Source: Bugula neritina (lineage: Eukaryota > Animalia > Bryozoa). From it: a stretch of DNA of 64,000 nt. The stretch's first letter is position 1, and the number at the start of each line of letters is the position of its first letter. A program made the position numbers and the translations under genes. Positions 4,327 through 27,934 of this stretch are shown here, piece by piece. Where the stretch lies: NCBI GenBank assembly GCA_964035545.1, contig OZ037766.1, positions 6,562,722 through 6,626,721 of the forward strand, given 5' to 3'. The notes under the pieces are model-generated. The model was not told the DNA's origin, did no database searches, and worked only from the letters and a program-made list of their open reading frames with translations.

Positions 4327-7300
4327 CTAGCTAACTGGGGTGAGGGCTCTCTTTTCTACAAGTGAATAAAATTACTTATAATATTTTATAACAAATAATA
4401 ATAGCATAATAATTCTAAAAGTTATATTCTATCACAGGTTTTCTAGAAAACTAAAAAGGTTAATTGTTCACTATGTAGCAGTATGTGACCAATCATGGAC
4501 AACGTGTCAGGTGAGGTAACTTAGCCTTACCATTGCTAGTGGTGGGTCGGCTACCAATAGGGGCATCAGTAGACTTAGTCACAGGGTCAGGGACATGAGG
4601 CACTGGGGCAGGGCCATACAACGCCTCTTCTGCGGGGTTGATCTTGGATGGTTGAAGCTGGTAGGTTCCCAGCTCAGCATGGGAAAGATCTATCAACACA
4701 CAAATGGGTCAAGAGAAAAAAATAACAAGTGTACTTTGACCTAAATCCTATTGTGATATTATGCAAACGTTGAATGGATTGTTGGATGTTTACAGCACTT
4801 TTATTTTGTAATTAACAACAATGTTACAAAAACTGAACTGAAAATTCGAAAAACTGAGACCTACAATCACGTATATCTAGTATTTTTACTTAATATAATT
4901 ATTTAATATGATATATATCAGACTAATATAATATAGAATGTAAACAAAAAACAAGCATAATTTTAATCAATAATTAAAATAATATGTACAAAAGTTAAAA
5001 TACTCAACTGCGTCTTACTACACTCAATATTCTTAGAGGTGTAACTACTCACGTGTACGACTTTCTCTGGGGCTATCCTGGATCTTGTTTGCTCCACTTC
5101 CCTTCTTAAGACACACCATGGCAATCACTATGACCAGCACAACCAGCATGGTACAGCCAACAACAACACCAATGATCACGCCCATCTTCATTCCAGCTGT
5201 AAAAACAGAGGCTCATTACCGGGAATACTGGGCAAGAGGATGCATGACTTTCAATTTGAAAACAAAGTTCAGTAACCGTGAATACATTATAAGAACGCAT
5301 TGGGAGTTGTCTCAACAAGGTACTTCCTTATTCTATATATGTCAAAAGTACATGTGCATATAAATAATATTTATGTATCATAATAAAGAGAAAACTGGAG
5401 AAAAGTAGCAAACGAAACAAATTTCTTGATGCCAACTTCAGTATTTGAAAAACAAATTTGGAACTCGCCTCAAGATAATGACAACCAGCTTACCTGGCTC
5501 AGAGACAGATGGCGAAGTACCAACGTTCTTATTGATGGAGACGCTGAAGCTGTCGGGGATCAGTGTGTATGTAGTCCCAAGGAGAGAGATGGATGAAGAG
5601 GAAGTGACCTGCTTCTCCAGTCTGGTGATCAAGACGTTCATATCTCCTTCACCCACCGACATCAGGTCAAACTCCACCACAATGCTGCCTGCGTAACACA
5701 GTCACAGTTCACATGAGCTTACAGTATTTCTATTAACTAAGTAGCTGGTACGAGCTAAAAACTGGTATGTACACAAATACAAGTACATAAACATACGAGA
5801 GTTGGTGAAAGTAGAGTCGGTGAGATGAAATACCAAACACTATGATCACATTTTACGCTACTAGACGGACATAAAGTCAAGGTTAACCCACCTTTAGAGA
5901 GAACTAGGTTTTCAATTCTGTCCTCTTCCACAGACATGGTATTCGTCAGCCATTCCAAGATGTCCGCTTTGACTTCACTGTAGTTAGCAATGAGTGCAGA
6001 GTCAGCGTCAATACTGAACACTATAGTGATGCTGTCGACATCGTCCTCAGACAGGTCATCAAGGAAGTTCGCAGCAGTAGTAGTAGTAGTAGCAGTTGTC
6101 TCCTCAGTAATAAGGGCTACAGAAGGACAACTCTTCAGATCAAAGACTGTATCAAGTTAAATAAGTAAAGCATATACAATGGAATGCTAAATGTAAGTGA
6201 GGACTTAGAAAGTTGTACCAGTAAAAAAGTAGGAGAAAACCATGGCATAGGCAACACAGTATAACATTCACCAAGAAATCACCACATTATTGTGTGTAAC
6301 ATAACTTATGGCTATGACAATATTTGTTGTAACCTTGAAAAAACCAACTTTAAACTCTAAAGACTTAACAATTTTGAGGTGAAATAAAACAATAGTTAAA
6401 TTCAATATTGAAAAATTGTGTTTGAAGGCTTATTTTTGATAACTCAAGTTGCTGATTGAATTAATTTTGATAATTCAAGAGATAATTGTTAACAAACCAG
6501 GAGCACAAGTTGGCAAGTGAACAAAGAGCCTAAACATCTAGAGTTGGTTGACACCAGTACACAGTGAGTAACTGAATGTATCAAACTGATGGTAAACTTA
6601 CACTCTGTAGTGGAAGGTATGGAGAGCAACGCCAGTTCTTCTCCTTCAAACACTCTGTGAATATTAAAATATAAGTATAAATAGATATAAACTATACAGC
6701 AAAGAGCTCTCTGGCATACACTAGCACGTATTAATGTGAATTAAACTAAATTAATTTTAATGTTGCCTACTTTCTCATAACTGACTATTCATAGAGATTA
6801 ATCCATTGAAAATTTCAGGTAGATGCAGTAACGAAGAAATTGAGAAAAGCCTGTGTTCTAGATTAGAAATGTAGCATAAGAAGTTATGTTCTCGCAAAAA
6901 TTTCAACCCGCACCCCAAACCAAAATTTATAAAGAAATTTAAAGAACTAGGCTATCTCAATTTCTCCACTACTGCTCCTAAATGAAAATTTTTCGCAACA
7001 TAGAGAATACATATACACTAGACACGCACGCGAAATATCCTGTAGTGTAGCAGTAGCATGTAGCAGTCCATTTGTTAGTAGAATTATCCAACATGGCGGC
7101 CTCACAGCCATCTTCACTCCAATCAACATTTTCATAATCCCAGTTACGGCACTAGAATTAGATAGTACAGTAGTATCAGAAACCAAAACCATGGTTATTA
7201 CTAAGAATAAAGCCGTGTGTTGAGTAAATATAAAGATATAAATACACATTCACAATTTTAATGTCAGCAAATAACCTGCCAAACGATGCATGCACCAGTT

Positions 7301-10300
7301 TACTATATACCGACATGTATCAACTTATTATATATGATAAAGTATCACAAATGCCTACAGGTGTCAACTCGTTGTATATGTTAAGGTATCACAATAGCTG
7401 ACAGGTATCAACTTACTTATATGATAATATATCACAATTGTTGACAAGTGTCAACTCATTGTACATAATAATTTAACACAATCGCCTACAGGTGTCAACT
7501 CATTGTATGCGAGGTATCACAATAGCTGACAGGTATCAACTCACCACATACTGATAGGTGGTAAAGTCAGGATCAGATGTCAAAGGTATAGTAAGTTTCA
7601 TAGGAACCAGCATGTCTGTAACTTCCACCAATTCGTAGGTAACAGGATTTACAAGATGAACAGCAACAATATCGCTGTACCTATAAATACATACTAGTGC
7701 TTAATACCAGTATTTACAAGAATAATTAAATGAATATATAAAAATTATGGATGAAAAATAGTTTGTCACCTGCATTTGCATTAAATACAACTGATTGTTT
7801 CATGTTATAGGTTGTCGACTGGTTTGCTGATAATTTACAGCAGCAGTTGTGTATGAGTGTTTTTTGGAGATTACAAAAACTCTTAAAGCTTGACCAATGA
7901 TTAACCATGGAAAGTTTTAGTTGAAGCCTGTAAGATGTCACACATCACAATTCCAGTCTCATAGACTATATGCAACGCATATAAGTACTATTTTAATGGT
8001 GAATTTAGTTGCATACCTGGTACTAATAAGTGGCTGAATGGCTTCGCTGGTAGCTGTAAGTGCATCATAACTAAGTTGACCAGTTGCTAAGCAACCGCCC
8101 AGGCAGCTGTTTTCATCTGTACAATTCCATTCCGAGTACAAATCTTGCATGTGCTGACCAATCTCAAACTAAAACAAGATTATGAAATTAATAAAACTGC
8201 ACACCAGTTTGAAACATAACGTGTTAGATGAGATGAGAGCAGAAAAATCACAGCAAACTGAAAGCTTTGTTAGCAGCTCTTACAAACTCTACACGAAATA
8301 CACAGCACTATATATGTATACACAAGAGTGAGTATACATACCATAGCAGCTTCAACAAGGTGTGTGCAGTTTTCACAAGCCGCCTGTAGAGTAGTGTTGG
8401 CCAAGTCAGCGAACGCTGCAGTGTAGACCCTAAAAGTTAGCATCTCCATTTCCCTGTAAATATTAATGTTGAGAAAATCATAGATACATAGAAGTTAATT
8501 CAGCACAGTTAATATGTGCATATAATACATATTTAGTAAGTAATATACAAACATGCATAAACAATGTGCGCAATATAATTTATTATAGACATATACAGTG
8601 TGAACAGTATAGTATAATATATAAATATACAATGCATACAGTATAGTATAATATATAAATATACAATGCATACAGTATAGTATAATATATAAATATACAA
8701 TGCATACAGTATAGTATACTATACAAGCAGTAAATAAGCAACCAACTTGGAGTTACCTACCCAACTTCAGCATCCTGGCCCTCTACCTGTCCAGCACACA
8801 CACCTTGCCATACACTTTCTAACAACTCCATAAAAGTTACAGCATCTTCACTGAGAATATCTGTCTCCGCTATCCCCTCCAGAGCTGTTAAGTAGGCTGA
8901 CAGGATCGTCTCCCCCTAAAAAAGACACGCATAAAATTAGTAGGCCAGGACTAACAAGTATGTCTAACTTCATATATAATGATAGCAATAACATACCTCA
9001 CTGATCTCCACAGAATTAATTAAGTATCCAGTCACTGATCTCTTCTTTCTTCTGGCATCATTGATGTCTGCCAAAGCTGATAATATAATACCACGTAACA
9101 TTATATAATATAATATTATAGAATAATATAATACCACGTAACATTATATAATATAATATTATAGAATAATATAATCCAAGTAACATTATATAATATAATA
9201 TTATAGAATAATATAATACCACGTAACATTATATAATATAATATTATATAATAATGTAATACTATGTAACATTATATAATATAATATTATAGGATAATGC
9301 AATGTATTACAATATAATATGAAATACTGCAATATAATATAATTCGATTTAGTACAATATAAAATGAAATAATCCAATTCAATATAATATAACATAAGAT
9401 AATGCAACTTAATACAATATAATATAATATAGTGCAACTTTAATATAATATAATATGATATTTTACACAATATAATACAATATAAGATATAAAATAACAT
9501 AGTACTATACAGCCACACATAATATGCTAGTGTCAGAAGATGCAGAAATTGCCAGACTCACCTTTCTCAGGGTTAATCTTAAACTCAGCGACCTCGGCTG
9601 TTTTGGCCTTCATTTGCTCCTGTGACCCCTCACTCAGTGCAGAAGACCCGGCAACTGACTTAGTCTGCTCTGTAGTCTCTGTTGTGTAGGACAGCTTGTC
9701 CAAACCTCCATCTGGATCATCTCTAGTCATTGTAAAATAAAACTATTAGAAACATAGCAAAATTACACCAACTTTGCAGTTACCATCAAACTGCGCTGCG
9801 ATTAAAGAGTTTTGTTGGCTTTAAGTTAAAATTAATAGTGTTCATGCTTTGGACGTTAGAAAACAAACAACTAACTGAGCATTGATCCCACTGAGAGTGC
9901 TGCTAGTTAGCATGTCCCCGAGTGCTACCACCATCTCCTTTACTTCATCCGTTGGGTCATCCATACTTTCAACATTATCCAACACCTGAGAGATCAATGG
10001 GCTTTCACCGCCTGCAACACACATTTCCTGTTCTGTTTTAATACTTTTAAAACTTGAGCAGTTACAAGCTTTAACACAGTGTGACCATTAAACTTCCCTA
10101 CATGCTCTCTGTTGAGACTATCACCAAATAAAGTAAATGTGTAGGTGTAAGTAGAAACTAACACCATATAAGGTAAATGTGAAGGTGTAGGTAGAAACTA
10201 ACACCATATAAGGTAAATGTGTAGGTGTAAGTAGAAACTAACACCATATAAGGTAAATGTGAAGGTGTAGGTAGAAACTAACACCATAAAAGGTAAAATG

Positions 10301-13300
10301 TGTAGGTGGAGAAACTAACACCATATAAGGTAAAATGTGTAGGTGTACATAGACACTAACACCATATAAGGTAAATACGTAGGTGTAGGTAGAAACTAAC
10401 ACCATATAAGGTAAATACGTAGGTGTAGAAACATACCAAGTGCCACATCATCTCCAGCATCCTCCAAGATTTGATCAATGTTAGATGTGGTGAAATCACT
10501 GTTTGAGAGTGTAATCTCCGTATCTGATACGTAGTCCGCACACGCCTTGTTTATGTCACACACTTGACACCCAAACTTTCTTATACCTGACATAATAGTA
10601 GAAATAATAATAGTAATAACAAAGCACACTATAGTGTTCTTTTCACATCGTTTCACCAGTTATATCACACCATACAAAGCACTATGTAATATTTAGTATA
10701 AGAGATGAACGTGTAATATATAAAACATTCAACTCTGGATAATGCAAAGTCAAAAACAACTCTAATACGTCAATATCTGAGCATGTTTTATACCTAAGAA
10801 GTGAAACGGCAGCAAACACAGCAATATACACATCCTGTGAGAGCTCTAGCATTCATATGTTATTATATATCTTACAGAATAATCATATTACATATTGCTA
10901 TAAATAATATAGTACTACTAAATCAATAATAGGGGAAAATATTCACCTGCAGATAGTTTAGTGGAGATTTCACTGGCAAGTTGAGGCTCTGTGGTAAGGT
11001 AGGTTACCTTGTCTTTGTTATCCACATCAACTGTGTAGAACCTGTAGGTGAGAGGGAAATCTGTCTCATCATCATCGCAGCCCTCCATTACAGCTGTGAA
11101 CTCATCAGTAAGGGCAGTTCCTGACGTCCCACCCATATTCTAAGAAAATAAACTAAATAAATAACATCTCAGCTAGGAGTATAAATAGAAGAATCAGATA
11201 CATTACTTGCATAATAAAGTGCAACAATTTCACTTCATAAAACAATTTCAAAAACATCCAACTTTTTCATAATAATATCAAACTTTCATAACTCATGAGT
11301 TTAATTAGCGAGAACGTAACTATTTTCATTACAAAGTAGATATATAGCAGCTACTTACGGTAACATCAGTGCACTGAGGCGCAGCATTAACTGTGACCTC
11401 CAAAGCAGCGACAGCAAAGTTATCAGAGTGAGTTGCGTCAAGTTCAAACTTGTACGTTGCACCGGGTTTTAGAAACTCAGCTGCAACAACAAGTGCTACG
11501 GACACAGCCCTGCCGTTTCCACCGTATCTTTTCCCGTTGGCATTTGAAAAAGCTTCTACATCCAGCACTTCATATCCTGTTTAAAATAGAGTTCATTATT
11601 CTGACCAATCAGCAACAAACATGTGGTGAACAGTCAGTAACCGATGATTATCCAACATATACCAGCTGAAGACTAGAAAACCTGCATGTTTGTCAAAACT
11701 CCTTTTAAATATTCAAATCAAGTGCATTTTAAAGTGTGGAAAAAAGTTTTATGCCAAAAAAATTTACTTTCAGATTCAAAGCATTCTACAAGTTATAACA
11801 ATGTTCATTGTATTTTGGCATTTAAACACCTTTTCTTGTAAAACTCGGTCACTTTTTAGAACGTGGTTTCAGTCTCATTTCAACTTTTGATAAAACTTAA
11901 TATAAATAGCAAAGTGGAGACAACTCACCTTCTCCCTCGACACAAGACCAGGTGACTGCGAAATCAAGAGGACTTAAGACTGAGCCTGCAATGACCAACT
12001 CCTTATTTGGATTGTGTGAGCCTTCAATCTCCTCTATTGATACTTTTGGTGGACTTCCTTCCTTAACTTCAACGGCAATCTCTTTCGTAGTGGATGATCG
12101 GTCATTTTTCCTGGAAAAGTAATTAGTAATAATTAAAGTGTTATAATTTCAATAAAGGACGCACATATATCTAAGACACCTAAATACACTGCTGCTATAA
12201 CATAGCACTGAAAATATTTGTCAACATTTTTATAGCACTTTTAACGAAATACAGGGCACTCTCTGTAGCTAACTGTTCTTATTACTATAAAATTCCATAG
12301 GTCTCAAGAAGAGCGGAATTTAGCGGATTCATGAGTTAAATCTAGTACTTGATATTCTAATACATCACAAATTGAAGTTTTCGGCCTGTAGCATAGTGGG
12401 ATATGAAAGGAGCACTGTATATGTCAAGGTGAATACTGCAATGACACACATTGTAAAAACATACTTGTAGGTCAAGGTGAATTGATATTTGGTGTTTGTT
12501 GACAGTGAAAACTCTGGTAGTTCAATGATTGACTTTGCATCCACAACATCTTGATAATCAGAGAAAGATACGAAACTGGTAGATCCGTCTGTATCGGTGA
12601 GAGATAGAAGACAGGCTCCCAGCTCTTCATTCTAAAAACACAAGTTTCAAGGCTATATGTTGGTGCATTAGAGAATAATCGGCAGAGGAAAAAAATAGAA
12701 ACAGGAAGTTGTACACACCCCTTCCTCGTCTTCCTCCACCCTCTCACAGGTCCATATGTGGTAGATACTGTCATTCTCATCGTCCCCTCGGTCCGGATCA
12801 TATGATGCAGACCCATCAAGAACCAACTTGGAGTCTGAACCTAATAAATACCACAAAAGATTACATTTACACTTTAGTAACTTAGTCTACAACAGTCCCC
12901 AGAGCAGTACTATGCGTGTTGGGAGGAAGCAGCCGTGGTCTAGAGGGTAGAGCGTTTGCCTACTAAACACGAAGTTATGGGTTTGAGCCCAGACAAAGGC
13001 CATTAGTGATGCTAGGAAGGGATCCAATCATAATTGCTCCTGTGCCCCATCTGAATAAGTCCTTAACCAGGTTCAACAAAAACCCTTTCCATCAGGGGTT
13101 CCTACAGGGATAGTGACTATAAACTTGTGTGAGTTTATTCTATGTGCCGTGACTATTCCCAAACTCTTACAAGAGTACACAATAATGTATATTTACAGTG
13201 AGACTGAGATGCTTAATTTACTCTCCATCTCCCTCAGCAACACATAAATAACAAAACCAGTAAACTCACCTGTTGTTATTAAAGGAGCTCGGGCTATTTT

Positions 13301-13573
13301 AGCAACCAGATCTTGACTCATAGTACTGATTGTGACAGACGCTTCAGCCGTAATAGTCATGTCATTTATTACCATAGCCAGCACCTTTATAGTGTAGCTG
13401 GAACCTCCTTTCATGTAGCCCGGAGGTATCCTTATTTTACTTCTGGTAAACCTAGACAGGTCTACATCTGCGGTACTCTCGGCCTCCCACTCAAACTGCA
13501 ACAAATACAGAGAAGATCCTATACTATACAGATATGTTAATATACTATATATACTATATATACTATATACACC

Positions 13574-13657
<84 letters not shown>

Positions 13658-16600
13658 TATACATGGTATGGTATACTATACTATACTATACTATAGAAAA
13701 GATACAATAGATTATACAACACATAAATATCACTATGCTATATATGACTATTACTGCAATTGGGGCTTTAGTATGTTTAGTTGCATCAAGTACTAGCCAT
13801 AGTGAACTGTCATTTGGCACAGTAAACCTAATGTAGACTAGAAACAAGACGCAGTGTGCATAATACAATCCTCTTAGCATTACATTGCTGTATGATGCAT
13901 GTGTAGAAAAAAACAGCTGATTGTACTATATGGGTCTGTTAATAGTACCTAGCAACTCTTGTTACTAACTCAGTTTAAAACTAAAAATTGTTAAAGTATT
14001 TCCAAGTACGATGTTGTCAACAGTTCAACAAATTTGCCACATCTGTTTTATGATATTTGGTTGGCATACGATAATATATTTGCACTCGGCACACCCGGTG
14101 TAGGATTTACAAAAGGTAAGAAAAGTGAGAAATACTTGTATCACATTCAGACGTCAACATACCGCTAGCCCATCTAGATCCAGACTGGCACACATAGACT
14201 TAGAGACTTGACTTCTAATGGTTAAAGGTTTGGAGGGATCATGATCTTTTATATCACCACCCAAGCTGATTTGCAAAGGCTGATCTCCTATTGTCCTTTC
14301 TATTATGGCTGACTTCTGCTCTGAAATCTCACCTTGAAGTGTGGTAGTATGAACAGAGATTTTGTACGAGTGGCCGGCGATCATCTGGTAACATATTACG
14401 AATAAGATTAATATAAATTATTTATGAATGATGAATTAAAAAAATTTTGTAATAAAATTAGGTGTATTGGCTAAAAGAATGTTGTAAAATATTACATTAT
14501 ATATTACTAGCAGAGATGGCAAAAGAATAAAGGAAATATTTACATCATCTGAAGTAAGCTGCAGCTGGTTTGTAGTGACGAGTTGAAACTTGTCTTTCAT
14601 GTCCTGCAAGTTACTCAGTACTGCACCATCAGTAGAGTCACTGTCTAGCTCGATATCCCAGACGTACGTCAGCTCAGCGCACCCACCGCCCTGGAACTTA
14701 GCTCTACAACCACAAACTTCATGCAAACACACAGACGCAGACGTATCATTTTCCATATCTGATAATAATACTTGTAAGCATTATCAACACTGACAGACGC
14801 TTGCCTCTTTCAAGCTAAAGAAACATTAAAAGAAATTAAAACTAAGACTCACTTGACAGTATACGAACACATATTATTTGCCACATCTGATAATAATACT
14901 TGTAAGCAAAAGAAACAATAAAAGAAATTAAAACTAAAACTCACTTGACAGTATACGAATCACAGCTTCCGATGGATGAAGGGCATTCGAGTTTTTCAAA
15001 TTTGACAGACTTCTCATTGCTAGCAGTCACCTACAGACATAGGAAATTGAAAATAATTTATGATTTTCAATAGAATTATTTTTATAACAGAACATGTAGC
15101 TACATGTAGCTGAATGAGAATCTTGAGAAAGATGCTGTCTTTATAGTTGTGTGTGTGTGTGTGTGTGCGTGTGTGCGTGTGTGCGTCTTTGCGTGTGCAA
15201 TTTAAAATACTCACCACGCGACTCCCAGACACGTGATTAGCACTGCCATCTGTGCCCCGCTGCCTCAGTTTGTTCTCCTTTATGTCTATAGAGTCATCAG
15301 GAGACAGACTGGAACTTTTTCCAAGTTTAATTTTCAGGTATTTACCTCCGACACTGCATTCTGGGGCTGCAAGAACAAAAGATAAGCTCCAAATCTGCAG
15401 ATAAGAAAACGAATCCTTCAAACTTAAAAAAAGATTATTGAATTGACTTTAGCAGATAAAATATAATTTATTATATCAGCAAGATATTTGTATACCCATA
15501 TTACAACTAAGTAATTATAATCTAAGAATGTTGATGTAACACATGCATATCTCAATAGCTTAAAAGATGCTATAATAAGAACTAGCACAACATTTATAAG
15601 TAAGTAACCAGTTAGGTATATCACCACTGGATAAAGCGTAACACATTACTAGATTAAACAGGAGAAATAAACATACAATCGCCAAGCTTAGCAACAGTCT
15701 GTGAGGAAAGAGCGTCAGCACAGGAGTCTACCTCTGTGATGGTGTCACTGAATGTCAGCACAACCCTGCAGCCTCCAACAAACTCGGCGCTGTCGAATGT
15801 TGGAGCTGGTCCAACCAGACTGAATGACAGCTGGTCGTTTGGCATTCTGCATTCATAATGTAAAGGTGAAAAATTAAGGATGAAAAATCAAAATAGACTT
15901 GCTATTTGAGCTTATGTCACAAAATAATTGAAAATAAAGTAAAAAAATGAAATAGTATTTCAAATCGCAAATTATATTCAGTTTTTCCAACTGAAAAATG
16001 AAAACATGATTTAAATATTTATGTATTATTTGTCATTGACATCCATAGCTCTGTTGAAAAATGCTATCAAGTTCAAATGGCAATGCAACATTTCAATATA
16101 ACATCTTAATGCGCTGTTCCACATGATGTATGACATATAATAGCATAGTAGTAGTTTCGATGTGTATATAAAGTTTGAAAAAAGAAAACTGCAAAACAGT
16201 AAAACTTACTTTATTCCACGTGTAGGCTTGGCTAGAGCTACACCTATTTGAGTGGTGAACGAAATTTTAGCACTTTTACGCAACTTGTCAGGAATATTGC
16301 ATATTACTTTACCATTATCTACAAACTAAGAATATAAGAAGCGATATTAGTACCGTTTACCTCAGCTCTCAATACATGTATTCTTGCTACTAGATATCGA
16401 CACTACTATAACTACGTTTCGTTTTAATTTATAGACATTGTCTTAAAGTATCCGGATTTCAAGCGTACAAACAACTGCACAAGATGGGTTCTATACTTAA
16501 CTTTCAGCTTACATTTACATTTACTGTGTTTCCATTGCTTTTAATGGATCCGAGTGGATGCTAGTAGGATATATTTGTGTTTGCAGCTAACATGAACTTA

Positions 16601-19600
16601 TGGTTGTGGTTTCATTTGATTCATCTGTTTCAAAAAATAATTGGAAAAAACTCACTTGCTCAATGTAAAGCAATGGAAACGCAGCGAATAAGAAATTGAT
16701 GATGTACGACTTACGGTAGCTTCAAAGGTAGCCACTTTCAATGTCATGCACTCTTTGGTTATTGTAATAGTGCACTCAGCAAAACAATACAGACTTCCTG
16801 TGTCCTGAAAACCACTGCCAGTGATTGTCAGCTGCAATATTCAGCAGCGGTTAAATATCATCAGCAGCTACGTTCAAAAAGTAACGCTTTTGAAAAAGAA
16901 ATTTAGAAAGTAAAGCAAACGAAATAATCATTATTAGACACTCAAGTACCAGCAGCTTATTAACTTGAAATTAATAACTTTACAATTTCATGAGTAATTT
17001 ATTTAGAGGTTACACCTGCAAAACACTGTCTCCTAGTTTTTAGATAACAAGATGGGTAATAGTTGCTCAGTATATAAAGTTTTCTCGAAACCCATCGCAA
17101 AAATTGAAATTATCCATAGATCTAATGGCATAAAAATTACAAGATACAAAAAATATTTAAATATAAAATGTGTTTGCTCACATACCCTATAGCTTGCCAC
17201 TACATTAAAAACAACTTTACAAAATCTTGAAGCTCTTTCGACATTATTAAAGCCAACTACCACAAGCATCATCATTATTGCAATTCACTAGCTCAATCCA
17301 AACATTTGCAAATGTTGGAAAACCCCCGAATCTTACCTCACTGGGTATAGCATCTAGGTCAGCTGAGCTGGGAGTTATTGAGGAGAGTGAAGGGAAACTG
17401 TAGATGGTTAGTTTACTCGTTGCAGTAATGGAAACTGGTTGATCTTCACCTTTTTCAGGAAACTTGCAACTGCAAAAACAGTAGAACTAAACAATACCTA
17501 GTTTATTCTCACCATATTAATTTTAGTCTTTGCGGGTAACGAGATTCTGCATAGCCAACTCAGTCAACTTGCTTATACAATTTATTTATAAATATACAAC
17601 ATAGAGTAACACTAAAAGAGTGTATAAAATTATATGCAAGAAACAAGAAGTAAAGAACTATAAAGAAGTAAAGAAGTAAAAGAATGTATAAAGTACATTA
17701 TTAAACAGTTTGATTAAAACCAAAACTCTCACTACATGTAATTAGAGCCATTTTTGAATCTTTGTAACATCAGAAATTATTTCCTTTCGAAAATTGGAAC
17801 TTTATAAAAGTTAATTTCACAAAAAAACATAATGAAAATAACTTTAGCAAAATTATACGTAGAGTGAGTTGGTTCACAGGTGACTCTGATTGGTTAGTTT
17901 TTATCATACCTAATAGTAAAAGTACCAGCTGCTTCATAAGCCCCATAAGAGAGAGTGAAAGTTCCCTTCTTGGCTGAGTAATCGGATACTTGTAGGAAAG
18001 TAGAAGCTGAAGTCTCTTCGTTAGTGATTGAGCATTCTGGCAGCGAGAACTTATCTAGACCAGCACCGCTGACTTCCAGTTCTCCAGAAACATCCACATT
18101 TCCAGATTTGGGAGTAATATCAAATTTTCGGCATCCTATGTAAAAACCACATAGTATTGGCAAACAAACTATATTAAGTTCTATATTTGTATTTATCTGC
18201 ACATAGATTGAGTCGCTAAAACACAATAAAGACTTCCACAAGTTATGAAAATCCTGCGCAGATATATTAATACGCTTAAATCTACTATTTCATTGTTTTT
18301 CATAATTCAAAAGATTTTAAACAAACAGTGGGTTTTGCACACTTATAACACAAGAGCTGCTATTGCGTGCGGCTCTAAAGGTTTGGTCATTTCTTAAGAT
18401 TTGTATTGCTTAAAAAACTTTCAAATTTTCTTAGCATAGTTATTATTAAATATAAGGGTTGTAAAACTAGAGAAACTTTTTGCACAGAATTCATTCAAAG
18501 CTGCAAACACCTTTATTGAATTCAGGGTCGTTAGGTTGGAGGCAGTTTCCACAATCATCTTCCTCGTTAGTCCCACCAGATTCAGCATAACAACTGCTGC
18601 AAGTGTCACTATTGCCATTGCACACGCCACACGCATCCATATCCTCATTAAAAGTTTTCCCTGTTTGCCCTCCAGTGCACACACCACAGCTGTAAATAAA
18701 GCAAAATCCTCGAACTATAGAGCAGTCTTATGTATAATAAGTGTGCACCTGATGACACAGAAACTTTACAAAATTAACTTGAAACTATCACGGCAAGCAT
18801 ATAACTTATAGTATAGCATGATAAGGTATTGAAACATTGAAAATCCCACGCATCAAACTCCGAATGATTCAAATTGTATTCAACGCCAGAACATGACTCA
18901 CTCATCAATTTTGGCTTCACTATTCCATACACCGTCACAGAACTCCCTTCGCATAAATTTCTGAACATTCATATTTGACGGGTAACAGCCATCATCTAAG
19001 TTTGCAAATTGTCTGTATGAGTTATCGCAACCGCCATTACAGTCGACGCCTTCATTCTCCACGCGATTAGTTCCCCCACCCACGCAGATGCTACATTTAT
19101 TGTAAATAGCATCTACAACAACATTGGCCTTAGAAAGATACACAATTTTACAAAGCACTTTTTCTCTGTAATACAAATAAACCTTATGTATGTTATTAAA
19201 CACTCATTGCAGATTAGCTAAAACTAACCCTAATATATATATTTGAAACCACTTTTACAATTGTGTGCTTTTTTAAAAATAACCTTATACTATTCTAATT
19301 TTGTAAAAGCAAATATTCTTACACCTATTGCAGATGTGAAGTGATCAAATACACTAAAATCTAAATAAACACTAAGCTTGAAGTCAATTAGCTAAAAGTC
19401 AAACTTAGCTAATCACATCAAGCTTATTATTATTATTACTATAGTTATAATAATAAAAAATTAAACCAAGAATAATAGTTACTTACTTTGGTTTAGCTTA
19501 TTATCATTATTGGGAAAAAAAACTTGAAAAATATTTACAGACGTCTGCTTACCTCCATCTTTGTCACCATTGCAGTCGACACAAGATTTACCATCCCCAC

Positions 19601-22600
19601 CGCACACGCCGCACACATCATCCACCAGAGGAGAAGAAGATATCACACCCTTACAGTTGACTTTCATAGCATTTCCCGTCATGTATGCTTGGGACAGCAC
19701 GTAGTCCGTATCAATGCACTCCTGCAGGCCAACAATTTTATTCAAAAAGCTGGTAAATGACAACAAGTTTAAAAGAAAATTCAAAAATCAGAATAAGTGG
19801 ATCTATTGGCTACCTCACAAAATGGTAGGGTGATAGAAAGACGATCCCCGGCCTTGTTATCTTTGTCTTCTTCAAAATCCCAGGCTAGGAAACTGTAACC
19901 AGTTGCCTCATTTCTGCTCCAGAAACTCTCTCTACAGAGTTGTAAGAAGACAAAGTCATACTTGCACCTCACAGAGACAACTTCTCTAGTTGTCTTGACA
20001 TGAGAACAGCTATTTCAATGCTACTGTTGTAGAGAGATATAGTGTAAGAGACAAGAAAATTATGAAAAAAATTCTTCGAGTAAAACTAGTAACAAGAAGT
20101 TTGTTTCTACACTAGGGTTATCACAATTATTTCGAAAAAAAAGAGATTATAATGTGTATGCTGAAAGTGGTGTAGACACAAACCAATAACTTAAGAGCTA
20201 GGCTGCTGGGAAAATTGACTGCAGCTTCTAGAAAGTTGCCTTTATAGCAGTAGTTGAAATGACATACAACTCTATTAGAGTAGTTTGTAAAAGGACAAAC
20301 CATAACATGATTTGAAAACAAGCAAACTAAAATTTCTCAAACACTCAAGCATCATGACTAGAAGCAAGTATGATGGAATGCATATATGAACACATAACAT
20401 GAGAGTGTGTTATATGTGTAGACTTGTATAGCAAGCTGACAACGTACTCATCTGTGGGTTGGTAGCGTACTAATGCATCAGGTGGCAACAGAAGACACTG
20501 GTGGTCATACAAACTACACCGTTCTTTTAATGTCCCTGCATCAGCTTTAGCTAGTTCTGCTCGCAAATCTTTTAGATCAGTTACCCCACAATCCTGCAAT
20601 GAAAACAAACCAATTTTATAAATACATTGGGGTTTTCTTCTCGGAAATCTGATTTCAAATATATTTGTGTCATGTTGACAAAAATTAAGTCAAGTTTACG
20701 ACATGTTTTGACATATATTACATTATTTATAGGTTAATAATGCAGAAGATAATAACTTATATATTATAATGATACACATCTGCTAGAAATAACAGGCGAA
20801 CTTATGCTGAATGATTTTATTATTAATACTTCAAAGGATCTCGTATGCCTGGATATACGAAGCTATTGTTTAGTCATAAACTGAAAATCCAACATAAGTT
20901 GAAAAAAAAATGGGGAAAAAAGCACAATCTGAAAATATTAAACTGTCCATAAAAATGAGAGTGTAAAGTGTGTAAAGTGTGTAAAGAGTGTAAAGTGTGT
21001 AAAGTGTGTAAACTGCAAAGAGTGTAAAGTGTGTAAACTGTAAAGAGTGTAAATAATGCAAGGAGTGTAAAGTATTACATCTGCTATCTTCTTCACATTG
21101 AATGCTGCAAAAGCCTTCCCACCAGGATTCGGATCATCTATCTCAATTTTTACCCAAGTTTCGGAGCCAGAGAGTTTATACTCGTACCATCCTAGGTCTG
21201 GAAGAACACAAACTAATTGCTGATTATCCAGTTACAGAAAAACAGCATTCTACAGTTTATATTACAGATCACACAGCTCTTTGCGCACAATACAAAGCTT
21301 TGAAAACACACACACAACACACACACACGAGCGCACACAAACATGTGCAAACGAACACACCCAAGTTTTGATTCAACAATATGTATACGTAGTTAGAACT
21401 TAAGTTGCAGTGCATATTTGTACAAAAACACAGGCACCACACATAAACACACACACACAGTTTTATCCTTGAAGCAGACAACTTTGTACTGCTATATTAC
21501 GCTTTGCACATGAAATGTAAATAAACACACCAGATTCTTGAGCTCTTATTACACACATTCCCAGCAGTGAGTTCTCTGCATCAGAAAAGAAACTCGAAAC
21601 AGCCTCATGTACTTCAATGCCTTGATTATCGTCTGCATTCAGAGGCACCTTTACGGTGGACCAGGCGGAATCGGCTAGACTTCCCAACGCCATTTCGGCC
21701 AGCACTAAGTCCGAGATGCGAGGGGCATCGTTTACAGCCTCAATCTAAATACACAGTAACAACTGTATTATATTATGTCATCCTATATGAAGGTCTTTCA
21801 GAAGAAATGCATACATCATTGGAAGTAGTGACCAAAGACGTATGAAAAGCTCAAAAATACATGCAGATTGTCACTTGCCAGTAGATAACACCAATTAAAA
21901 ACCATTACATCTATTTCAAAATCATAATTGCTAAAAATGCTTCTTTTAATAAAAATCTGCCACTAGACAAGGCTGGTAGCAATAGCAAAACTGAATGTTT
22001 TAGGAAATATTTACCAAATAGGATTTATTATAACTGGTTATACTAAGTGTAATATAAACAGGTGTTTTCAAATATAAAACTAAAATAAGCCACTTTGGAA
22101 TTGGCTTACTTTTACAGTGAATCGAATGCTATTCTTCGACAAATCATTCTCCGACACATCTTTTGTCCTCACAGGTAAAGACCCGCTCCAGCCTTTCACC
22201 TCCAGTTCGAAGGAACCAAAGTAGTCCTTTTCAGGTACAAACTTGAGGGTTTTACTTCCCAGAGTTCTATCCATCACAGAAATCAGCTCCCATGAGTCTT
22301 CATCATCTGCAAACAATACGCTGCTTGTATCGAGATCATGCTGTCAGCTAGACATGCATATTTTATCAACTTGTGTGATACGCTTCAACTTAGTAGTTGT
22401 TCCCCCTTTTTTAACATAGCATACTGAATGCTGAGTTATGATATTTTAGTTTGTAGGACGTCTAATGTTTTTATAGTGTTTTACTTAAAGTAGTGAAATC
22501 CTTTATTTTGTGTTTTCTCAAATTTAGGTAAATATTTATAACATTAAACAGTTTATAGATTGTTGCAAATAAATTAGCAAGTCTACTTGACGCGATGTAG

Positions 22601-25600
22601 AGATATTAACGAGGCAAGAGCATTAAAAGTCTATTAAAACAGTTGAAATTTGACTTTTCTCTATAAAGAAAACTGTAACTTCCTGTTATACCAATATAGT
22701 AGTGCTTATACCCTATCAAAAACTTCATGCAGACAAGGGACAACTCCTTATAGATATTCATTCGACAATACTACAGTTAGGATTTAGACTCTGGGGTGAT
22801 ACATTGCATTGCTCAAGAGTGACCCAGAGTCGTTTGACGTGACATTGTAGTTGAGGAAGTTATTTTTTGTTATTAAAATGCTAAGTTAGTTTGCATAGAG
22901 GGAAGCAATAATTTGTTTAGAAAGGTTGCATACCATCTCCAGAATTTTTGTTTTTGCCAGCAGAATTAGAAGCTCCGCCAACAGATATGCTCTCTGAATC
23001 TTTGGCCAACTCCTTGAGACTGAACTTGCCCACTTTTTTCTTGAGCTCACTTACAAACGAAACAGATATGCCCATCTCACTATTGCCCTGCTCTGTCAAC
23101 TGGGCTATCTTCTCATAGTATCTAGTGATGGTATCAATACCGAACTCGCTCTGTATCAGGCAGTTGTCACTAGCATCCAGGTCTACAGACAATGAGTGAT
23201 TAGTAATTACAGTATTTTAACTCTTGGAGTATGCTGCAACTATGATTAGTGATTCACAATTATATATCAAAGAGGTGTACATTTAAAATATTAAAATTAT
23301 CAAGACACAATTTTTTCACATATCCGGTAAAATGGATAAATAAAAAGAACTTCGTGAATTGCAAGATTGCATTAAAGTGAGTTCAGTGAAAAAATTGAGA
23401 AAAACTGTACGTAGTAGCTATCCCAATTCTTTAAGAACTATTGGCAAGATTGTATGCATTTACTACATACTCCCAGTTTCATTGCAAAAATACACATGCT
23501 GATAAATGCGGTACAAACATTACAAGTTAAAGCATGAGATATAAATAACATAAAGTAAACAAAAATTAAAATGTAGTCAAAATTTAAGTAAATAAAGCCA
23601 ATACTACCTTAAAACCAGGTTGTGATCTATTAGCTAATAAAATACACATGTACGATGGTTAGTTGAGTGAGAAGGCAGGTTAAGAGAAACTGCCATAGTA
23701 TTTTGACAGTTAGTGGTAAGTGATTGAATAGAAGTAGCAACAAGTTGGCTGCTACAGCATACTATAATCATGTATGTGAGCTGGAAACAGTAGAATATAC
23801 CAACCCTTGGGGGTCAGATCTGTAGGGTTAGAAACTGTAACAGGGAACTCTATCTCTGCCGGCACATCTTCTTGCAATGTTATGACTCGTGACGCGTTAT
23901 CATTCAGAGTAATATTCGGTTGAACTTTAGTGGGAAATATGATGGCAACCAGAGTGTGTATGTCACCATCTACAAAGCAGGGTCCGAAATAATACCTTGT
24001 ACAGTTGAAGTGACTTTCTTCTACATATTTATTGTTTTAGGCCAAACAAATCTATGATGTTTAGGGAAGTGATAAAAGTAATATCTCTACTCGAAAAGCG
24101 AATAAATTTCTTGATTACAACCCTATAACAGTGGTGTCTAACCTTCATCAGTGGTGTTCACTTTAGCGATACCGTGGAAGGTAATATTGTCTGGAATGCA
24201 GGCTATTTTAGTCTCAAGGTCAAGTTGCTCTTGATTCTTGATGGCAGACCAAGTTCTCACGACTTGTGTTTTAACAGAATCTTTACCTTGAGCATTATCT
24301 AAACATGAAATATATTTATGTGAATTACATGACTTAGAATGTTATTTATAGCCTTAAAAATAGAATATTCATGTAGCAACTTATAATATATATTTGAAGT
24401 AGTTAAATAAATTATTAAATACATTACTTTGCACATGCTGGAATTTTAGAGCATCACCGATGTAAATATTGTCATCATAAACATCACAAAGTTGGTTAAA
24501 TCTTTTAAGCTGCTGTTACATACTGCTTAGCCCTAAGGCTAAGATATACAATCAAATTAAAAAGATGATAGAATTAGACACTTAAATTATCTTTAGTATC
24601 CTAAAGAGTAGAAAAGATATGACTCTCAAATTTTCTGAGATTTGCAAAGAAATGAAAAAACCACAACAGACACATCTCAACTCAACACGTATGACAAGAT
24701 CAGCCAAGAACTAACCAGATGCTTTTTCAATCTCCTCTTCTACTTCTTTAACTACCTTCTTCCAAGTGCAACCTTTAGTGGCAGAGCTAATATTAAACTT
24801 TAGAGTTTGCGGGATGTCCGTTTCATCTACCTCCTTGAACAAAGAGCCGACTTTACCAGTGTTCATAGAAATAGGCTCAGGGTCCTCAGAAGCTTCATAG
24901 GTTGTGATCCTGCAGAGGTTAGGCTGGGAGTCATCCAATGCCTCAGAGCTAAAGTCTATCGAATAATACAATGTAAGCCATGACTATGTGCCAATACAAG
25001 AGACTACACAGGGCCAGTACAGGTATCAGTAGCGGATATGGTACACCTACGGCTGCAACAAAGGCATCTAACACTGCGCTGAAATATCCATTCTAGATAT
25101 TCCAGTCGATGTTTGGAAACAGTTGCATTGAATGAAACCACAACCATAAGTTGTCGCAGACCGCAATCACAAATTCATTTGTACGAATCCATTTGAAGCA
25201 ATGAAAATGCAGTGTACATGAAAGCAGCTATAAATAATGACAAATTTCTAAAAAATTCTTTTTTTTTCATAAATGTAGTTCAATGCATTAACTACAAGAA
25301 AAATAGCCCATGTGCTGTACAAATTAACTTTTCATTCAGTCATTGATTAGTTTAATACTTGTGGCTGCAGCCAAACACATGAGACCTTCATAGTTTCACA
25401 AATTATATAATAACAATAAATTCAAGGCCCTAATAGAAACTTATTCTTTCGAAAAGTGAAGTACAAATTAAATTAGAAGAAATGTCACACTGTAAAATAA
25501 TGGAACAGCTATACATACCCACACCACAGTAGGAGCCACCGCAAGCATTCTCACAGCACTTCTGCAGACCCGAGCACCCCTCATTGTCGTTGACACAGAG

Positions 25601-27872
25601 TCGAGCAGAAGAACAGGTCTTACCGCTTGTCAGCGGCTCAACGGGCGGACACTGGCCGTCCTTATCCAGCTTCTTAGTCATACAGCTAGTGCTGACACAG
25701 GCATCGCTGCTTACACAGTACACCTGTGAAGACACACAAATAGAATACACATGCTGCCCATGAACCACTTTCATTAGCCTAGGTTTTTAGAGTTGGCAAC
25801 GTTGGTACTGGGCCTTATTAACAATTAATAGTCAAAAGCACTTACAGTGCCAGTTGGGCAGATGCTAAACATTCCACCAGTAGTGTGTCTGTTTCCTCCA
25901 TCCGTATCCATCAAGTACTTCATTTCATACACCAGAGCCTCCTTCATGTAATCAGCTGTTACAAAAAACTAGTTTAATAATTTTGCACATAATATAATTA
26001 GGATATTAAAGATATTCTGATTAATCAGTTGGTTTAAAAAAACAATCTGATAACATACCAGTAGTCTTCATCTTTGGACACTTTATCGGTATGCACTTCA
26101 TTGTCTCCATGCAAAAGTACTGCAAACACAAACATCATGGTTGATATAACTATTTTTCAGTTATACACAACATCTACATGCTTGCAATAAAAGTAATGCC
26201 TCAAGTATAGAGCTAAGATGACAAAACCTGAAAGAATACTACTATTAATTATCAACAATTTCTAGGAACGACAAATAAAAATAGCCATATAAATGCAGCA
26301 GCTAATTGTAAAACATTAGCTTTATGAGTCAGTTTACTTCATTCAGTGCACACCAGCAAATTATGACCTAACGTCAAAGTTTGCTCAAAATTCATTGAAA
26401 TTTACTATGTATACGTGATAGTTTTATGTGCTGGTTCTAATTATGCATAAAAGAAAAGGCTGGGAGGGGATTCCCCAACATTAAAGCACATGTCATTGCC
26501 ATATGCACTTAATATTATATATGTGCTACTGTTACGAAAAAACCTAAGGTCTAAAAATCCAAATTAGCTAAATAATTAGGAAAAACATGGGAAATTAAGC
26601 AAGATTAATAATAACCTTGACTATTTAGTTGTATTTAATGACATGCTATTAGTTTTAGGCAAAAACCCATATATGTTAGCAGCTAAATTGGAAAAAATAG
26701 CTAAAAACTGGAGATTTCGAGTGTGTACTAAATTAAGCTAGACCCTTATTCAAAACAAAAGAGAGAAAAGATAGATTACAGAAGTCAAAACTAAGTTTCA
26801 CAGAAATGCTAAGTAAAGGGGGGGGGGGGATATGGCCATCAACATGTACAACCAGAACATTCAGGACACAGTCTTGTTTGTTGTGTTAACAATAGATCAA
26901 GATGATAGCAAAATACAATAAGTATGTAGATCAGAAAATAGAACAGATTACTAGGCAATTGAAAGCAAGTCATTAATTATTAAGTCATGGATGAGTAGTC
27001 GCAAGGCAACTAAATAATATTATGAAACCTATTGTGAAATAAAAAGAATAGAAAAACCATAAATCAATGCTTCAGTTAGATTTAATATAGCAAGCATTGT
27101 TGTTGAGAAACACATGGAGCATCTGTTATTGATTGTCACACAATAATAAGCCATAGTACCCTCCAGAGGAATATACTGGCGTGAATTTTCAACAAAAGAA
27201 TTTAATAGAAAAAAAAAGGTTTAACCAAGCAGATAAAGATATTCCTACTCTTACATCTACAAGTGTTGTACTGACTCACCATTCCTCCACTACACATCTT
27301 GTGAGCTCTCCGTGGTTTCATCATAGAGGCCACGGCATACGCCAGAGATGAACGAAATCCTGCAATATTTAACAGTATAAATCAACATTTAATCTCAACT
27401 ACATAACAAAAGAGTACATCTATTTGTAATTTATTAATATGTTCATAACCTAACCAGAATTTAACACACAGTGTTGAAGTAACATGCAATATTTACCCTC
27501 ACGAGTTATGTGTCTCCATTCCGGGGATCGAGAATTCCCGCCCGTGGAACTAGACCAGGTGGAACTAGACTCAGCGGAACTAGACCAGGTGGGACTGGAC
27601 TCAGCGGAACTGGACCAGGTTGGATTAGACTCAGTGGAACTAGACTCAGTGGAACTGGACTTAGTGGACCTAGTCTTAGTGGAACTGGACTTAGTGGACC
27701 TAGTCTTAGTGGGACTGGACTCAGTGGAACTAGACCAGGTTGGATTAGTCTCAGTGGAACTAGACTCAGTAGAACTAGACTCAGTAGAACTAGTCCAGGT
27801 GGGTGTGGATGAGCTTGTACTTGAAGTAGACTTTATTGCCACAAGGACCAAGACAACTGTTGCCAACTTCAT
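4327..27872 (-). CDS. Giant single-pass REJ/GAIN(GPS)-domain receptor with a polycystin-1-like ectodomain, ~2497 aa, 47 coding exons
   Basis: Exons, 5'->3' on minus: 27872-27497, 27359-27280, 26119-26059, 25955-25846, 25723-25519, 24955-24716, 24298-24143, 23969-23805, 23182-22934, 22306-22110, 21744-21531, 21197-21079, 20593-20448, 19931-19814, 19721-19553, 19112-18902, 18689-18511, 18135-17910, 17469-17337, 16831-16715, 16325-16210, 15846-15677, 15366-15215, 15030-14945, 14703-14544, 14384-14163, 13495-13270, 12840-12719, 12631-12465, 12110-11929, 11576-11359, 11139-10947, 10586-10437, 10011-9876, 9722-9562, 9076-8997, 8915-8761, 8453-8342, 8168-8017, 7680-7545, 7151-7030, 6654-6602, 6116-5892, 5688-5494, 5196-5053, 4689-4531, 4355-4327. 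All introns are GT-AG, phases are consistent at every junction, and the total is 7494 nt. Motifs: MKLATVVLVLVA (signal), WAP KDGQCP..C..C..D..C.G.QKCC..CG..C, IEAVNDAP, D.CGVCGG, LTITGSGF (IPT), LDGSASYDPD / GTALTDEF / FPLTYRF / LSAG (REJ), CRNWD...WSEDGC...CYC (GPS), GSIVVEF (SEA-like), GVIIGVVVGCTMLVVLVIVIAMVCL (TM). Confidence 0.88.
5053..5196 (-). other. Single transmembrane-helix exon of the REJ/GPS receptor
   Basis: AGMKMGVIIGVVVGCTMLVVLVIVIAMVCLKKGSG: about 24 hydrophobic residues followed by a KK stop-transfer. Only two short Pro-rich exons and a stop follow. Confidence 0.88.
6817..6983 (+). mobile_element. ~165-bp MITE-like element, copy 1
   Basis: Imperfect ~26-bp TIRs (tagatgcagtaacgaagaaattgaga ... 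tctcaatttctccactactgctccta); the internal sequence is shared with the copies at 27935 and 30613. Confidence 0.78.
7030..7151 (-). other. GPS motif exon of the GAIN domain
   Basis: Translates CRNWDYENVDWSEDGCEAAMLDNSTNKWTATCYCYTTGYFA|VF, matching the C-x2-W...W-x3-GC...CxC...FAV GPS pattern. Confidence 0.85.
7310..7544. repeat. Intronic minisatellite, ~43-bp unit, ~5 copies
   Basis: Repeated (g)tatcacaatagctgacaggtatcaact, abutting the donor at 7544. Confidence 0.85.
8605..8718. repeat. Intronic minisatellite, ~33-bp unit, ~3.5 copies
   Basis: acagtatagtataatatataaatatacaatgcat repeated. Confidence 0.85.
9080..9505. repeat. ~45-bp tandem repeat grading into degenerate (ATATA)n
   Basis: ataatatataataccacgtaacattatataatataatattataga occurs about 4 times, followed by pentamer low complexity. 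Confidence 0.85.
10130..10435. repeat. Intronic minisatellite, ~40-bp unit, ~7 copies
   Basis: gtaggtgtaggtagaaactaacaccatataaggtaaatgt repeated up to the donor at 10436. Confidence 0.9.
12925..13139 (+). mobile_element. tRNA-derived SINE, copy 1 (intron of the REJ receptor)
   Basis: A-box-like TGGTCTAGAGGG and B-box-like GGTTTGAGCCC, followed by a body (gtgatgctaggaaggg..ataattgctcctgtgcc..catcagggg..tttatt) shared with three other copies in the window. Confidence 0.8.
13580..13653. repeat. (TA)n microsatellite
   Basis: Uninterrupted TA run. Confidence 0.97.
20958..21072. repeat. 9-bp tandem repeat (gtgtaaa(gt/ga/ct))n
   Basis: About 12 units directly beside the donor at 21078. Confidence 0.88.
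25519..25723 (-). other. WAP (four-disulfide core) domain exon
   Basis: KDGQCPPVEPLTSGKTCSSARLCVNDNEGCSGLQKCCENACGGSYC shows the 8-Cys WAP spacing with KCC..CG..C. Confidence 0.82.
27545..27810 (-). repeat. Coding 15-bp tandem repeat encoding a Ser/Thr-rich mucin-like pentapeptide (SSTES / SPTWS / RSTKS)
   Basis: About 17 units of (c/t)tagactcagtggaa-type sequence inside the first coding exon. The phase-1 donor at 27496 fits only the Ser/Thr frame. Confidence 0.88.
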
Positions 27873-27934
27873 CTTTCTACTACAGAATACAGCTTATTCC
27901 TCAAGGTGTGACTCAACAAGTTCTAGTACACAGT

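Follow-up and report, generated by a model that had tools for sequence, protein, structure and literature searches.

Introduction

Channel-less proteins that combine a REJ domain with a GPS motif have been described in the sea urchin, where the functionally characterised SpREJ1, with one transmembrane (TM) helix, serves as the sperm receptor for egg jelly's fucose sulfate polymer, and SpREJ2 has two TM helices, both being built without the 11-TM part (PMC1934368). GAIN domains outside 7TM and 11TM proteins have also been described in microbes (bioRxiv 10.64898/2026.05.12.724683). Here we analyse a gene in a stretch of 64,000 nucleotides (nt) from the bryozoan Bugula neritina (assembly GCA_964035545.1, contig OZ037766.1, positions 6,562,722 to 6,626,721 of the forward strand; hereafter the window, in which position 1 is the first letter), which an earlier note had read as a polycystin-1-like giant receptor without a channel and as a third type of GAIN receptor. 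GAIN and SEA are two self-cleaving domains for force-sensitive animal surface receptors, and they have usually been studied in separate families. We find that the locus encodes one large surface glycoprotein, of type I and crossing the membrane once, with about 2,580 amino acids (aa), and we assign a probability of about 60% to the reading that this is a REJ- and GPS-bearing protein without a channel, in which the GPS is dead and a SEA-type joint cleaves, making it a force-shed tether.

Results

A single-copy gene on the minus strand

Stop-to-stop frames and the RNA-supported terminal exon place the gene on the minus strand, between an ATG at 27872 and a TAG at 4327-4329, the same start and stop as in the earlier note. 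The open frame at 27453-27893 begins MKLATVVLVLV at that ATG, the first after the stop, and from there coding-looking minus-strand frames continue in descending order to about position 4500. A gene model obtained by splice-aware dynamic programming, with GT..AG introns, phase tracking and codon log-odds, follows an open, phase-consistent path through the whole locus and comprises 50 exons and 2,606 aa. One of these exons, at 10066-10157, was rejected as spurious because exon 35 joins the acceptor at 10011 in phase, and the resulting reading, GGESPLISQVLDNV, matches an orthologous transcript; its removal leaves 49 exons and about 2,584 aa. The complete, phase-consistent gene proposed earlier is retained, with its 47 exons and ~2497 aa revised to these figures; some further short exons within the model's N-terminal third are uncertain. 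All searches were made exon by exon, by reference, or with public proteins, and the joined spliced model served for phase, length, hydropathy and motif counts only. A search of Rfam gave no match in window positions 1-30000.

RNA contigs from four runs of four studies were compared with window positions 1300-7200 (5,901 letters), and proved to be spliced and 90-99% identical to the window. They join 7030 to 6654, 6602 to 6081 (with 20 additional unaligned letters), 5891 to 5687, about 5492 to 5195, 5053 to 4689, and 4531 to 4355, and the parts skipped carry CT..AC ends, equivalent to GT..AG on the minus strand. The joint from 5891 to 5687 is present in all four runs, and those leading from 7030 to 6654 and onward from 6602 were seen in runs X1, X3 and X9. 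One contig (X4 record 14) contains five exons in a row and ends at 4094, 233 nt past the TAG. Cumulatively, the spliced contigs connect the last seven exons and finish in the 3' untranslated region (UTR), which supplies the junction evidence called for earlier in that part of the gene. The terminal exon (4094..4355, minus strand) thus holds the last eight codons (KRALTPVS), the TAG and at least 233 nt of 3' UTR. From exon 45 to the part of exon 46 that is conserved, there are 20 nt in the relative and 65 nt in the window, such that the Thr-rich linker differs in length by 45 nt, in frame.

Orthologues among bryozoans

A HMMER search with the SEA-like exon against 1.84 billion cluster representatives returned three true matches: protein P0001 and two exon-sized fragments at 47% identity; a fourth, the repeat protein P0004, was spurious. 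P0001 is hypothetical protein EB796_016846 (435 aa) from the B. neritina draft genome GCA_010799875.2, whose contig aligns to the window at 87-94% identity. It is the counterpart of window exons 41-50, with exon identities of 81-98%, and its C-terminus reads KRTLTPVS against KRALTPVS in the window. In the genome it matches this locus only, indicating that the gene is single-copy. Word-index searches with P0001 as well as the GPS region of P0006 added three proteins: P0005, which comes from the bryozoan Watersipora subatra and is uncharacterised; P0006, encoded by a transcript contig of 3,304 nt; and P0007, from a marine metatranscriptome.

The arrangement of parts is the same in the relatives. 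A transcript of another bryozoan (L005) carries the REJ domain, linker, GPS region, SEA-like domain, TM helix and tail in one frame, and in the Watersipora locus (L004) these parts follow one another in identical order, all on one strand. Two genomic fragments cover shorter portions: L002 reads VFEGDE, followed by a Thr-rich stretch and the SEA-like exon, and L001 reads LSAG at the end of one SEA-like half and SIVVDFDL at the start of the next, followed by the TM exon. As judged by sequence, the orthologues found in the databases searched are from bryozoans only, and they are uncharacterised; the suggestion that uncharacterised homologues might exist in other invertebrates thus holds within this one phylum.

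Absence of channel, PLAT and 7TM parts

We scanned the whole genome in six frames for REJ, PKD_channel, PLAT and 7tm_2. Clusters of REJ, PLAT and channel matches lie at four loci (C3:31.84 Mb, C3:32.10 Mb, C1:24.71 Mb and C1:25.94 Mb), which are canonical polycystin-1-like genes. On C2, where the window lies at C2:6,562,722-6,626,721, the nearest matches to PKD_channel (PF08016) are at 1.68 and 11.19 Mb, with none near the window, and the nearest PLAT (PF01477) is at 12.4 Mb, about 5.8 Mb away. The nearest 7tm_2 matches (PF00002) are separate intronless open reading frames (ORFs) 176-260 kb before the window. Because the transcript passes a stop codon and ends in a UTR, the C-terminus is conserved, and no channel, PLAT or 7tm_2 match lies nearby, the gene's reading as channel-less stands: as first proposed, no PLAT, 7TM or channel region precedes the stop, and no multi-TM exons follow, the protein having one TM helix and a tail of about 83 aa and the RNA contig stopping in the UTR at 4094.

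The intronless 7tm_2 frames form a group in their own right. At C2:6,302,208-6,386,374, at least nine such ORFs of about 700 aa, each with a full 7tm_2 domain, lie on both strands, and this cluster of secretin/adhesion-type G-protein-coupled receptors (GPCRs) looks like a recent tandem expansion.

A GPS motif lacking its catalytic residues

The GPS exon (7030..7151, minus strand; RNA pieces at 7030-7152) carries the full Cys/Trp signature of the motif, C-x2-W-x6-W-x4-C-x14-C-x-C, followed by T-T-G-Y-F. The Pfam GPS profile scores 16.6 bits at 7032-7151; across the window exon and three orthologues it reaches 14.5-17.4 bits, with no match in P0007, and all these scores are below the cut-off of 22.5 bits. 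In an alignment of the window exon, P0005 and P0006 to six genuine GPS exons (39-59 bits) that the genome also contains, C1, W4, W11, C32 and F40 are invariant throughout, whereas the catalytic site reads H-[LMF]-T-x-F in all six genuine exons and [TS]-T-G-Y-F in the three orthologues (T-T-G in the window, S-T-G in P0005 and T-T-G in P0006). Established GPS cleavage occurs after H-L and before a Thr or Ser. Read from their sequences, the three bryozoan GPS motifs compared are missing both the catalytic His and the Thr/Ser nucleophile and, given this mechanism, should not cleave; the GPS is probably uncleavable and not that of a working GAIN autoprotease. Of the GAIN/GPS assignment made earlier, the Cys/Trp signature is borne out and the catalytic H-L-T is missing.

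Upstream of the GPS, exons 40-43 (7545..8915, minus strand) comprise, according to alignment and an AlphaFold2 (AF2) model, two helices and then a beta-rich region, which together form a putative GAIN region. P0001 (at 92-98% identity), P0005 and P0006 all align to these exons. The AF2 model of this part has a mean pLDDT of 44.8 (30-59 over the two AF2 models that cover it) and was built from only three to four homologues; it folded poorly because the alignment was shallow, only bryozoan-type relatives having been found. Its structure matches are weak and cover the last 60-90 residues only (CELSR1, BAI2 and BAI3; Z 4.3, Foldseek E 0.25-0.32), and neither Foldseek nor VIA searches with this model gave a significant match. 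Comparison of AlphaFold models with known GAIN structures, proposed earlier as a check, has therefore not secured the fold. All language-model look-alikes of the region are GPS clusters, with scores of 0.87-0.90, which we treat as a lead only.

Downstream, a 53-nt exon (6602..6654, minus strand), delimited by RNA joints, encodes a strand after the GPS that begins VFEGEE, of which VFEG is invariant in the orthologues. Counted from GYFAVF, about 158 aa in P0001 and about 173 aa in the window separate the GPS from the TM helix, in line with the ~150 aa of additional ectodomain and the Thr-rich linker of the earlier note. The GPS is thus not directly before the first TM helix, where GAIN/GPS normally sits.

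A SEA-type domain next to the membrane

The SEA-like domain is encoded by two exons on the minus strand. The first (5892..6146, with RNA at 5891-6081) contains the Thr-rich linker and the first half of the domain (beta1-alpha1-beta2), is 85% identical to P0001 and 47% identical to P0002 and P0003, and ends within the Gly codon of a G/S motif (the slash marking a potential cleavage site); the second (5494..5688), attached by the RNA joint from 5891 to 5687, starts SIVVEFDL and provides the second half (beta3-alpha2-beta4). In the AF2 model of P0001, residues 205-315 are predicted with pLDDT 80-94 to form a beta-alpha-beta-beta-alpha-beta sandwich (beta 212-222, alpha 225-246, beta 253-259, beta 263-270, alpha 277-289, beta 293-314), with G261-S262 in the turn between strands 253-259 and 263-270 (beta2/beta3). 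Five species whose sequences otherwise agree at 40-50% all keep the motif G-S-I-[VK]-[VI] without variation, and it is the Gly codon of this G/S that the intron cuts.

Searches with this model matched the C-domain of EpCAM/Trop2 most highly (Z 10.4-11.7), followed by the SEA domain of MUC16 (Z 7.4-8.3; at best 101 residues aligned at a root-mean-square deviation of 3.7), the membrane-proximal domain of IA-2/phogrin (Z 6.6-7.5), dystroglycan (Z 7.1) and the SEA region of Gpr126 (Z 6.8); a Z of 6-8 is also reached by many unrelated ferredoxin-like folds. A Mucin-1 (PF01390) cluster was among the Atlas structure matches, and the language-model look-alikes of this part scored 0.80, which is chance level. 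The SEA-like domain described in the earlier note thus recurs as a confidently modelled fold with a MUC16 SEA match of up to Z 8.3. By predicted fold and by motif, the juxtamembrane domain appears to be SEA-type, its membership of the SEA family being unproven, and autoproteolysis at G/S is a prediction only.

Other SEA-bearing loci of the genome were also seen. Bugula exons that properly match Pfam SEA end at profile position 58-59; at one such locus (L009, C2:1002500-1003900), an exon matches Pfam SEA and the next begins with GSIIVNF. Judging from these sequences, genuine Bugula SEA domains also have an intron adjoining G/S, like the window gene. Four near-identical SEA exons, one every 5-14 kb, occur at C2:12.93-12.96 Mb. 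A weak match to the TM helix and tail of P0001 led to a Bugula ORF of 330 aa (C4:18327169-18328161; L007 1670-2662, minus strand) that resembles the end of a dystroglycan-like protein, with a beta-rich domain, the motif KQG/SVVVQYSL, a TM helix, and motifs of the PPAY and PPV types in its tail. Homology of the SEA-like part to this ORF was considered and rejected, as BLASTP aligned the GS[IV]VV motif only.

Polybasic site, TM helix and tail

A potential convertase site, RRKKR/S, is encoded at 8997..9067 (minus strand), in the linker or helical part that precedes the beta-rich GPS region. By motif count in the model it is the single R-x-[KR]-R site of the whole protein, and it lies in a Gly/Ala-rich stretch ahead of two predicted helices. 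The site is kept in three species, as RRRRKR/A in P0006/L005 and SRKKR/A in Watersipora (L004 9217-9387).

The TM exon (5053..5196, minus strand; RNA pieces at 5053-5195) encodes the single TM helix and then KKGSGANKIQDSPR. The whole model has a single Kyte-Doolittle peak above 1.5, with the hydrophobic segment at residues 2496-2533, and the AF2 model of P0001 places a helix at 332-355, which bears out the expectation of one TM helix. A PDB sequence profile search gave a similarity of this helix to APP (E 0.03), which we read as TM composition and not homology, and also gave ADGRG1 at E 0.17. The tail is about 83 aa long (about 80 had been predicted). Its exon (4531..4689, minus strand; RNA pieces at 4531-4689/4692) contains a conserved NP..EALYGPAP, and the orthologues conserve KK.SGANK[IV].[HD]SPR, NP..EALYG.AP and a C-terminal TPV, with TPVS as the C-terminus in three of four sequences (P0001, P0006 and P0007).

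REJ and the remaining ectodomain

The REJ domain (PF02010) spans six model exons at 10947..13495 (minus strand). The family matches collinearly in five open frames (profile positions 12-89, 97-132, 175-229, 273-322 and 324-382), the best single exon scoring 27.6 bits, and the six-frame whole-genome scan for REJ recovers the same place. In the orthologous transcript, the ORF L005:1-1353 scores 144 bits (E 5.6e-42). An exon-wise Pfam run over 39 open frames yielded no families other than REJ, WAP and, weakly, GPS, and in the precomputed Pfam annotation of the public models of 1270 aa and 1981 aa at the orthologous loci, REJ was the only one.

Three of the labels given earlier to the ectodomain thus stand, namely the REJ domain, the N-terminal signal and mucin start, and the WAP domain. 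Exon 1 (27497..27872, minus strand) is an open frame of the model with a hydrophobic, signal-like start, followed by about 106 aa of Ser/Thr-rich, mucin-like sequence (62% Ser+Thr over residues 20-125). The WAP four-disulfide-core exon (25519..25723, minus strand) scores 24.3 bits with PF00095 (E 3.9e-5), for which the cut-off is 20.8. Three further groups of minus-strand exons were assigned to no family: nine unclassified, phase-consistent ectodomain exons at 19814..24955, including one at 21531-21744 with the motif IEAVNDAP; three Cys-rich exons at 18511..19721 with visible CG[VI]C.GG-type repeats; and the exons at 16715..18135 that had been called IPT/TIG and whose motifs look IPT-like on inspection. 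Taken exon by exon, the nine unclassified exons gave no Pfam family and no meaningful PDB sequence match, and the CG[VI]C.GG-repeat and IPT-like exons gave no Pfam or PDB sequence match. The cadherin-like and IPT/TIG labels accordingly found no match in such exon-wise searches, a weak test since introns cut domains.

Other features of the window

The intron after the GPS exon contains, at 6817-6985, a 169-bp dispersed repeat with at least 2,402 candidates genome-wide; 39 other scored copies are 90-95% identical. RNA contig depth over it reaches about 117,000, with many different flanks, and it belongs to no Rfam family. It looks like a short interspersed nuclear element (SINE) or miniature inverted-repeat transposable element (MITE) that is carried in many transcripts, and an intronic RNA gene at this place was ruled out, the very deep RNA coverage being that of a dispersed repeat. 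Beyond the gene, window positions 2082-2872 are covered by a separately assembled transcript piece in all four runs, which has no joint with the gene and extends outside the compared stretch. Apart from two short minus-strand ORFs whose ends fall at 2082-2152, it contains no ORF of at least 50 aa, and it is probably the UTR exon of a neighbouring gene or a non-coding RNA.

Discussion

Our preferred reading is of a surface protein whose ectodomain keeps the REJ domain and the GPS-containing region of polycystin-1-type proteins, while the PLAT domain and the 11-TM channel part were never present or have been lost. A convertase would cut at the polybasic site and the SEA-type domain would cleave itself at G/S, so that the protein would mature into two or three non-covalently held pieces. 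It could then act in adhesion or as a mechanical tether, in the manner of dystroglycan or a transmembrane mucin: tension on the long ectodomain would part the SEA halves and shed the ectodomain, after which the stub might signal through its short conserved tail or be processed within the membrane. Cleavage, shedding, signalling and ligand are here inferred from sequence motifs and predicted structure. A more far-reaching version, which we regard as doubtful, is that in a bryozoan ectodomain of polycystin-1 type the role of self-cleaving joint passed from a fossilised GAIN/GPS to a newly inserted SEA-type domain next to the membrane. Together with the conserved furin site this would yield a receptor of three non-covalently associated pieces, whose shedding under force would lay bare a stub that signals by way of the conserved tail or of intramembrane proteolysis.

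Several of our results weigh against the tether, and they concern the joint, the GPS-bearing region and the continuity of the gene. The best fold match of the juxtamembrane domain is not a SEA domain but EpCAM/Trop2, about 3 Z above MUC16 SEA, and we know of no self-cleavage in the EpCAM/Trop2 C-domain; the ferredoxin-like fold is common; Pfam SEA (PF01390) has no match at E<=1 in the window exons, P0001, P0005 or P0006; and the window is missing from the six-frame genome scan for SEA at E<=10. Many SEA and SEA-like domains, moreover, do not self-cleave. The domain might then be a non-cleaving, EpCAM/Trop2-like or generic SEA-like spacer in a static adhesion or matrix-binding molecule, cut by furin or sheddases at most. 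However, G-S-I-[VK]-V falls exactly at the beta2/beta3 turn and does not vary over five species that share only 40-50% identity, and we consider this spacer a possible but distinctly less probable explanation than a cleaving joint. On the side of the GPS, the GAIN fold of the putative GAIN region depends on a weak model with partial matches.

As to continuity, exons 1-37 are predictions of ab initio modelling, and public annotations split the locus, into three models (1270, 135 and 435 aa) in the B. neritina draft and two (1981 and 499 aa) in Watersipora subatra. The transcript L005 (contig from SRR9648469) also has a single in-frame TAG at 1354-1356 (AAG TAG CAG GCA), in the linker from REJ to GPS. 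The split annotations and the TAG would fit two or three separate genes, encoding a REJ protein that is secreted and a short protein of GPS, SEA and TM parts. However, the annotations break at different introns in the two species, and the short models begin at an internal Met, without a signal peptide, although GPS and SEA must be extracellular; the 1981 aa that lead up to the polybasic exon in Watersipora fit the about 2,090 aa to the same exon here; and an open, phase-consistent path runs through the locus. The frame of L005 is otherwise continuous over 1,041 codons and is kept across the TAG, a place at which sense codons stand in both Watersipora and the window; on this ground we rejected a stop that is conserved as well as a two-cistron arrangement, and the TAG may be an error, an allele or a (NAGNAG-type) splice variant of the contig. 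The differing introns, internal Met, matching lengths and sense codons argue that the split is an annotation artefact, the B. neritina and Watersipora models having cut the gene wrongly, and we consider separate genes improbable. Even less credible, to the point of being very improbable, is the idea that the gene was copied from a canonical polycystin-1-like gene and is truncated or decaying, or that this is an isoform with PLAT and channel exons further downstream: the four canonical REJ+PLAT+channel loci could have served as the source of a copy, but the transcript closes in a UTR after the stop codon, there is no PLAT or PKD_channel for megabases around, the locus is single-copy, and the conservation of the TM helix, the tail and the C-terminal TPVS in four species argues that this end is under selection.

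Set beside its nearest counterparts, the Bugula protein resembles polycystin-1 and PKD1-like proteins in having a REJ domain followed by a GPS-bearing region within a very large multi-domain ectodomain, but has no PLAT domain, no 11 TM helices and no PKD_channel, and lacks the GPS catalytic residues; the genome carries four canonical copies of that type at other loci. In SpREJ1, EGF and C-type lectin domains are present and the GPS comes just before the TM helix, whereas the Bugula gene has WAP, mucin-like and unclassified repeat regions, a GPS without H-L-T, and an additional SEA-like domain of about 110 aa. With the mucins MUC1 and MUC16 it shares a Ser/Thr-rich part, a ferredoxin-like domain before a single TM helix, G/S[VI]VV and a short conserved tail; unlike transmembrane mucins, it gives no match to Pfam SEA, its mucin-like part is short and N-terminal, and the bulk of its ectodomain is REJ and globular. 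The likeness to the EpCAM/Trop2 C-domain extends over 109-116 aligned residues, with a single TM helix directly after, but at 7-13% sequence identity and with unrelated N-terminal parts, and EpCAM is not known to have a GS[VI]VV self-cleavage motif. Dystroglycan, which self-cleaves at a G/S site, and IA-2/phogrin resemble it in their juxtamembrane SEA-like fold, but no sequence homology was detected outside the motif. ADGRG6/GPR126 and ADGRF1/5 likewise have SEA and GAIN/GPS in one ectodomain; there, however, SEA is N-terminal to GAIN and GAIN abuts the 7TM region, whereas the Bugula order is reversed and there is no 7TM. The SEA domain of Gpr126 is described as carrying a furin site (PMC6954182).

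The claim of a third type of GAIN receptor was therefore overstated, as the channel-less SpREJ1 and SpREJ2 and GAIN domains outside 7TM and 11TM proteins had already been described; what stands of it is a REJ/GPS protein without a channel and with a SEA-like domain before one TM helix. What is new is that the GPS is followed by a SEA-type domain and then one TM helix, that the GPS has lost its catalytic residues while the SEA motif is intact, and that the protein is apparently restricted to bryozoans. Our literature search found no paper that mentions REJ and SEA domains together.

The practical importance of the family is modest, as it is seemingly confined to bryozoans. It nonetheless extends channel-less REJ proteins, until now those of the sea urchin, to a lophotrochozoan phylum, and shows a setting in which to ask what role a REJ/GPS ectodomain plays when neither channel nor GPCR is attached to it. 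A GPS stripped of catalytic residues and followed by a SEA-type domain with an intact motif allows one to ask, in a case provided by nature, whether the two modules can stand in for each other. If the more far-reaching version above is true, the protein would represent a natural module swap between the two autoproteolytic mechanosensor domains known from animals.

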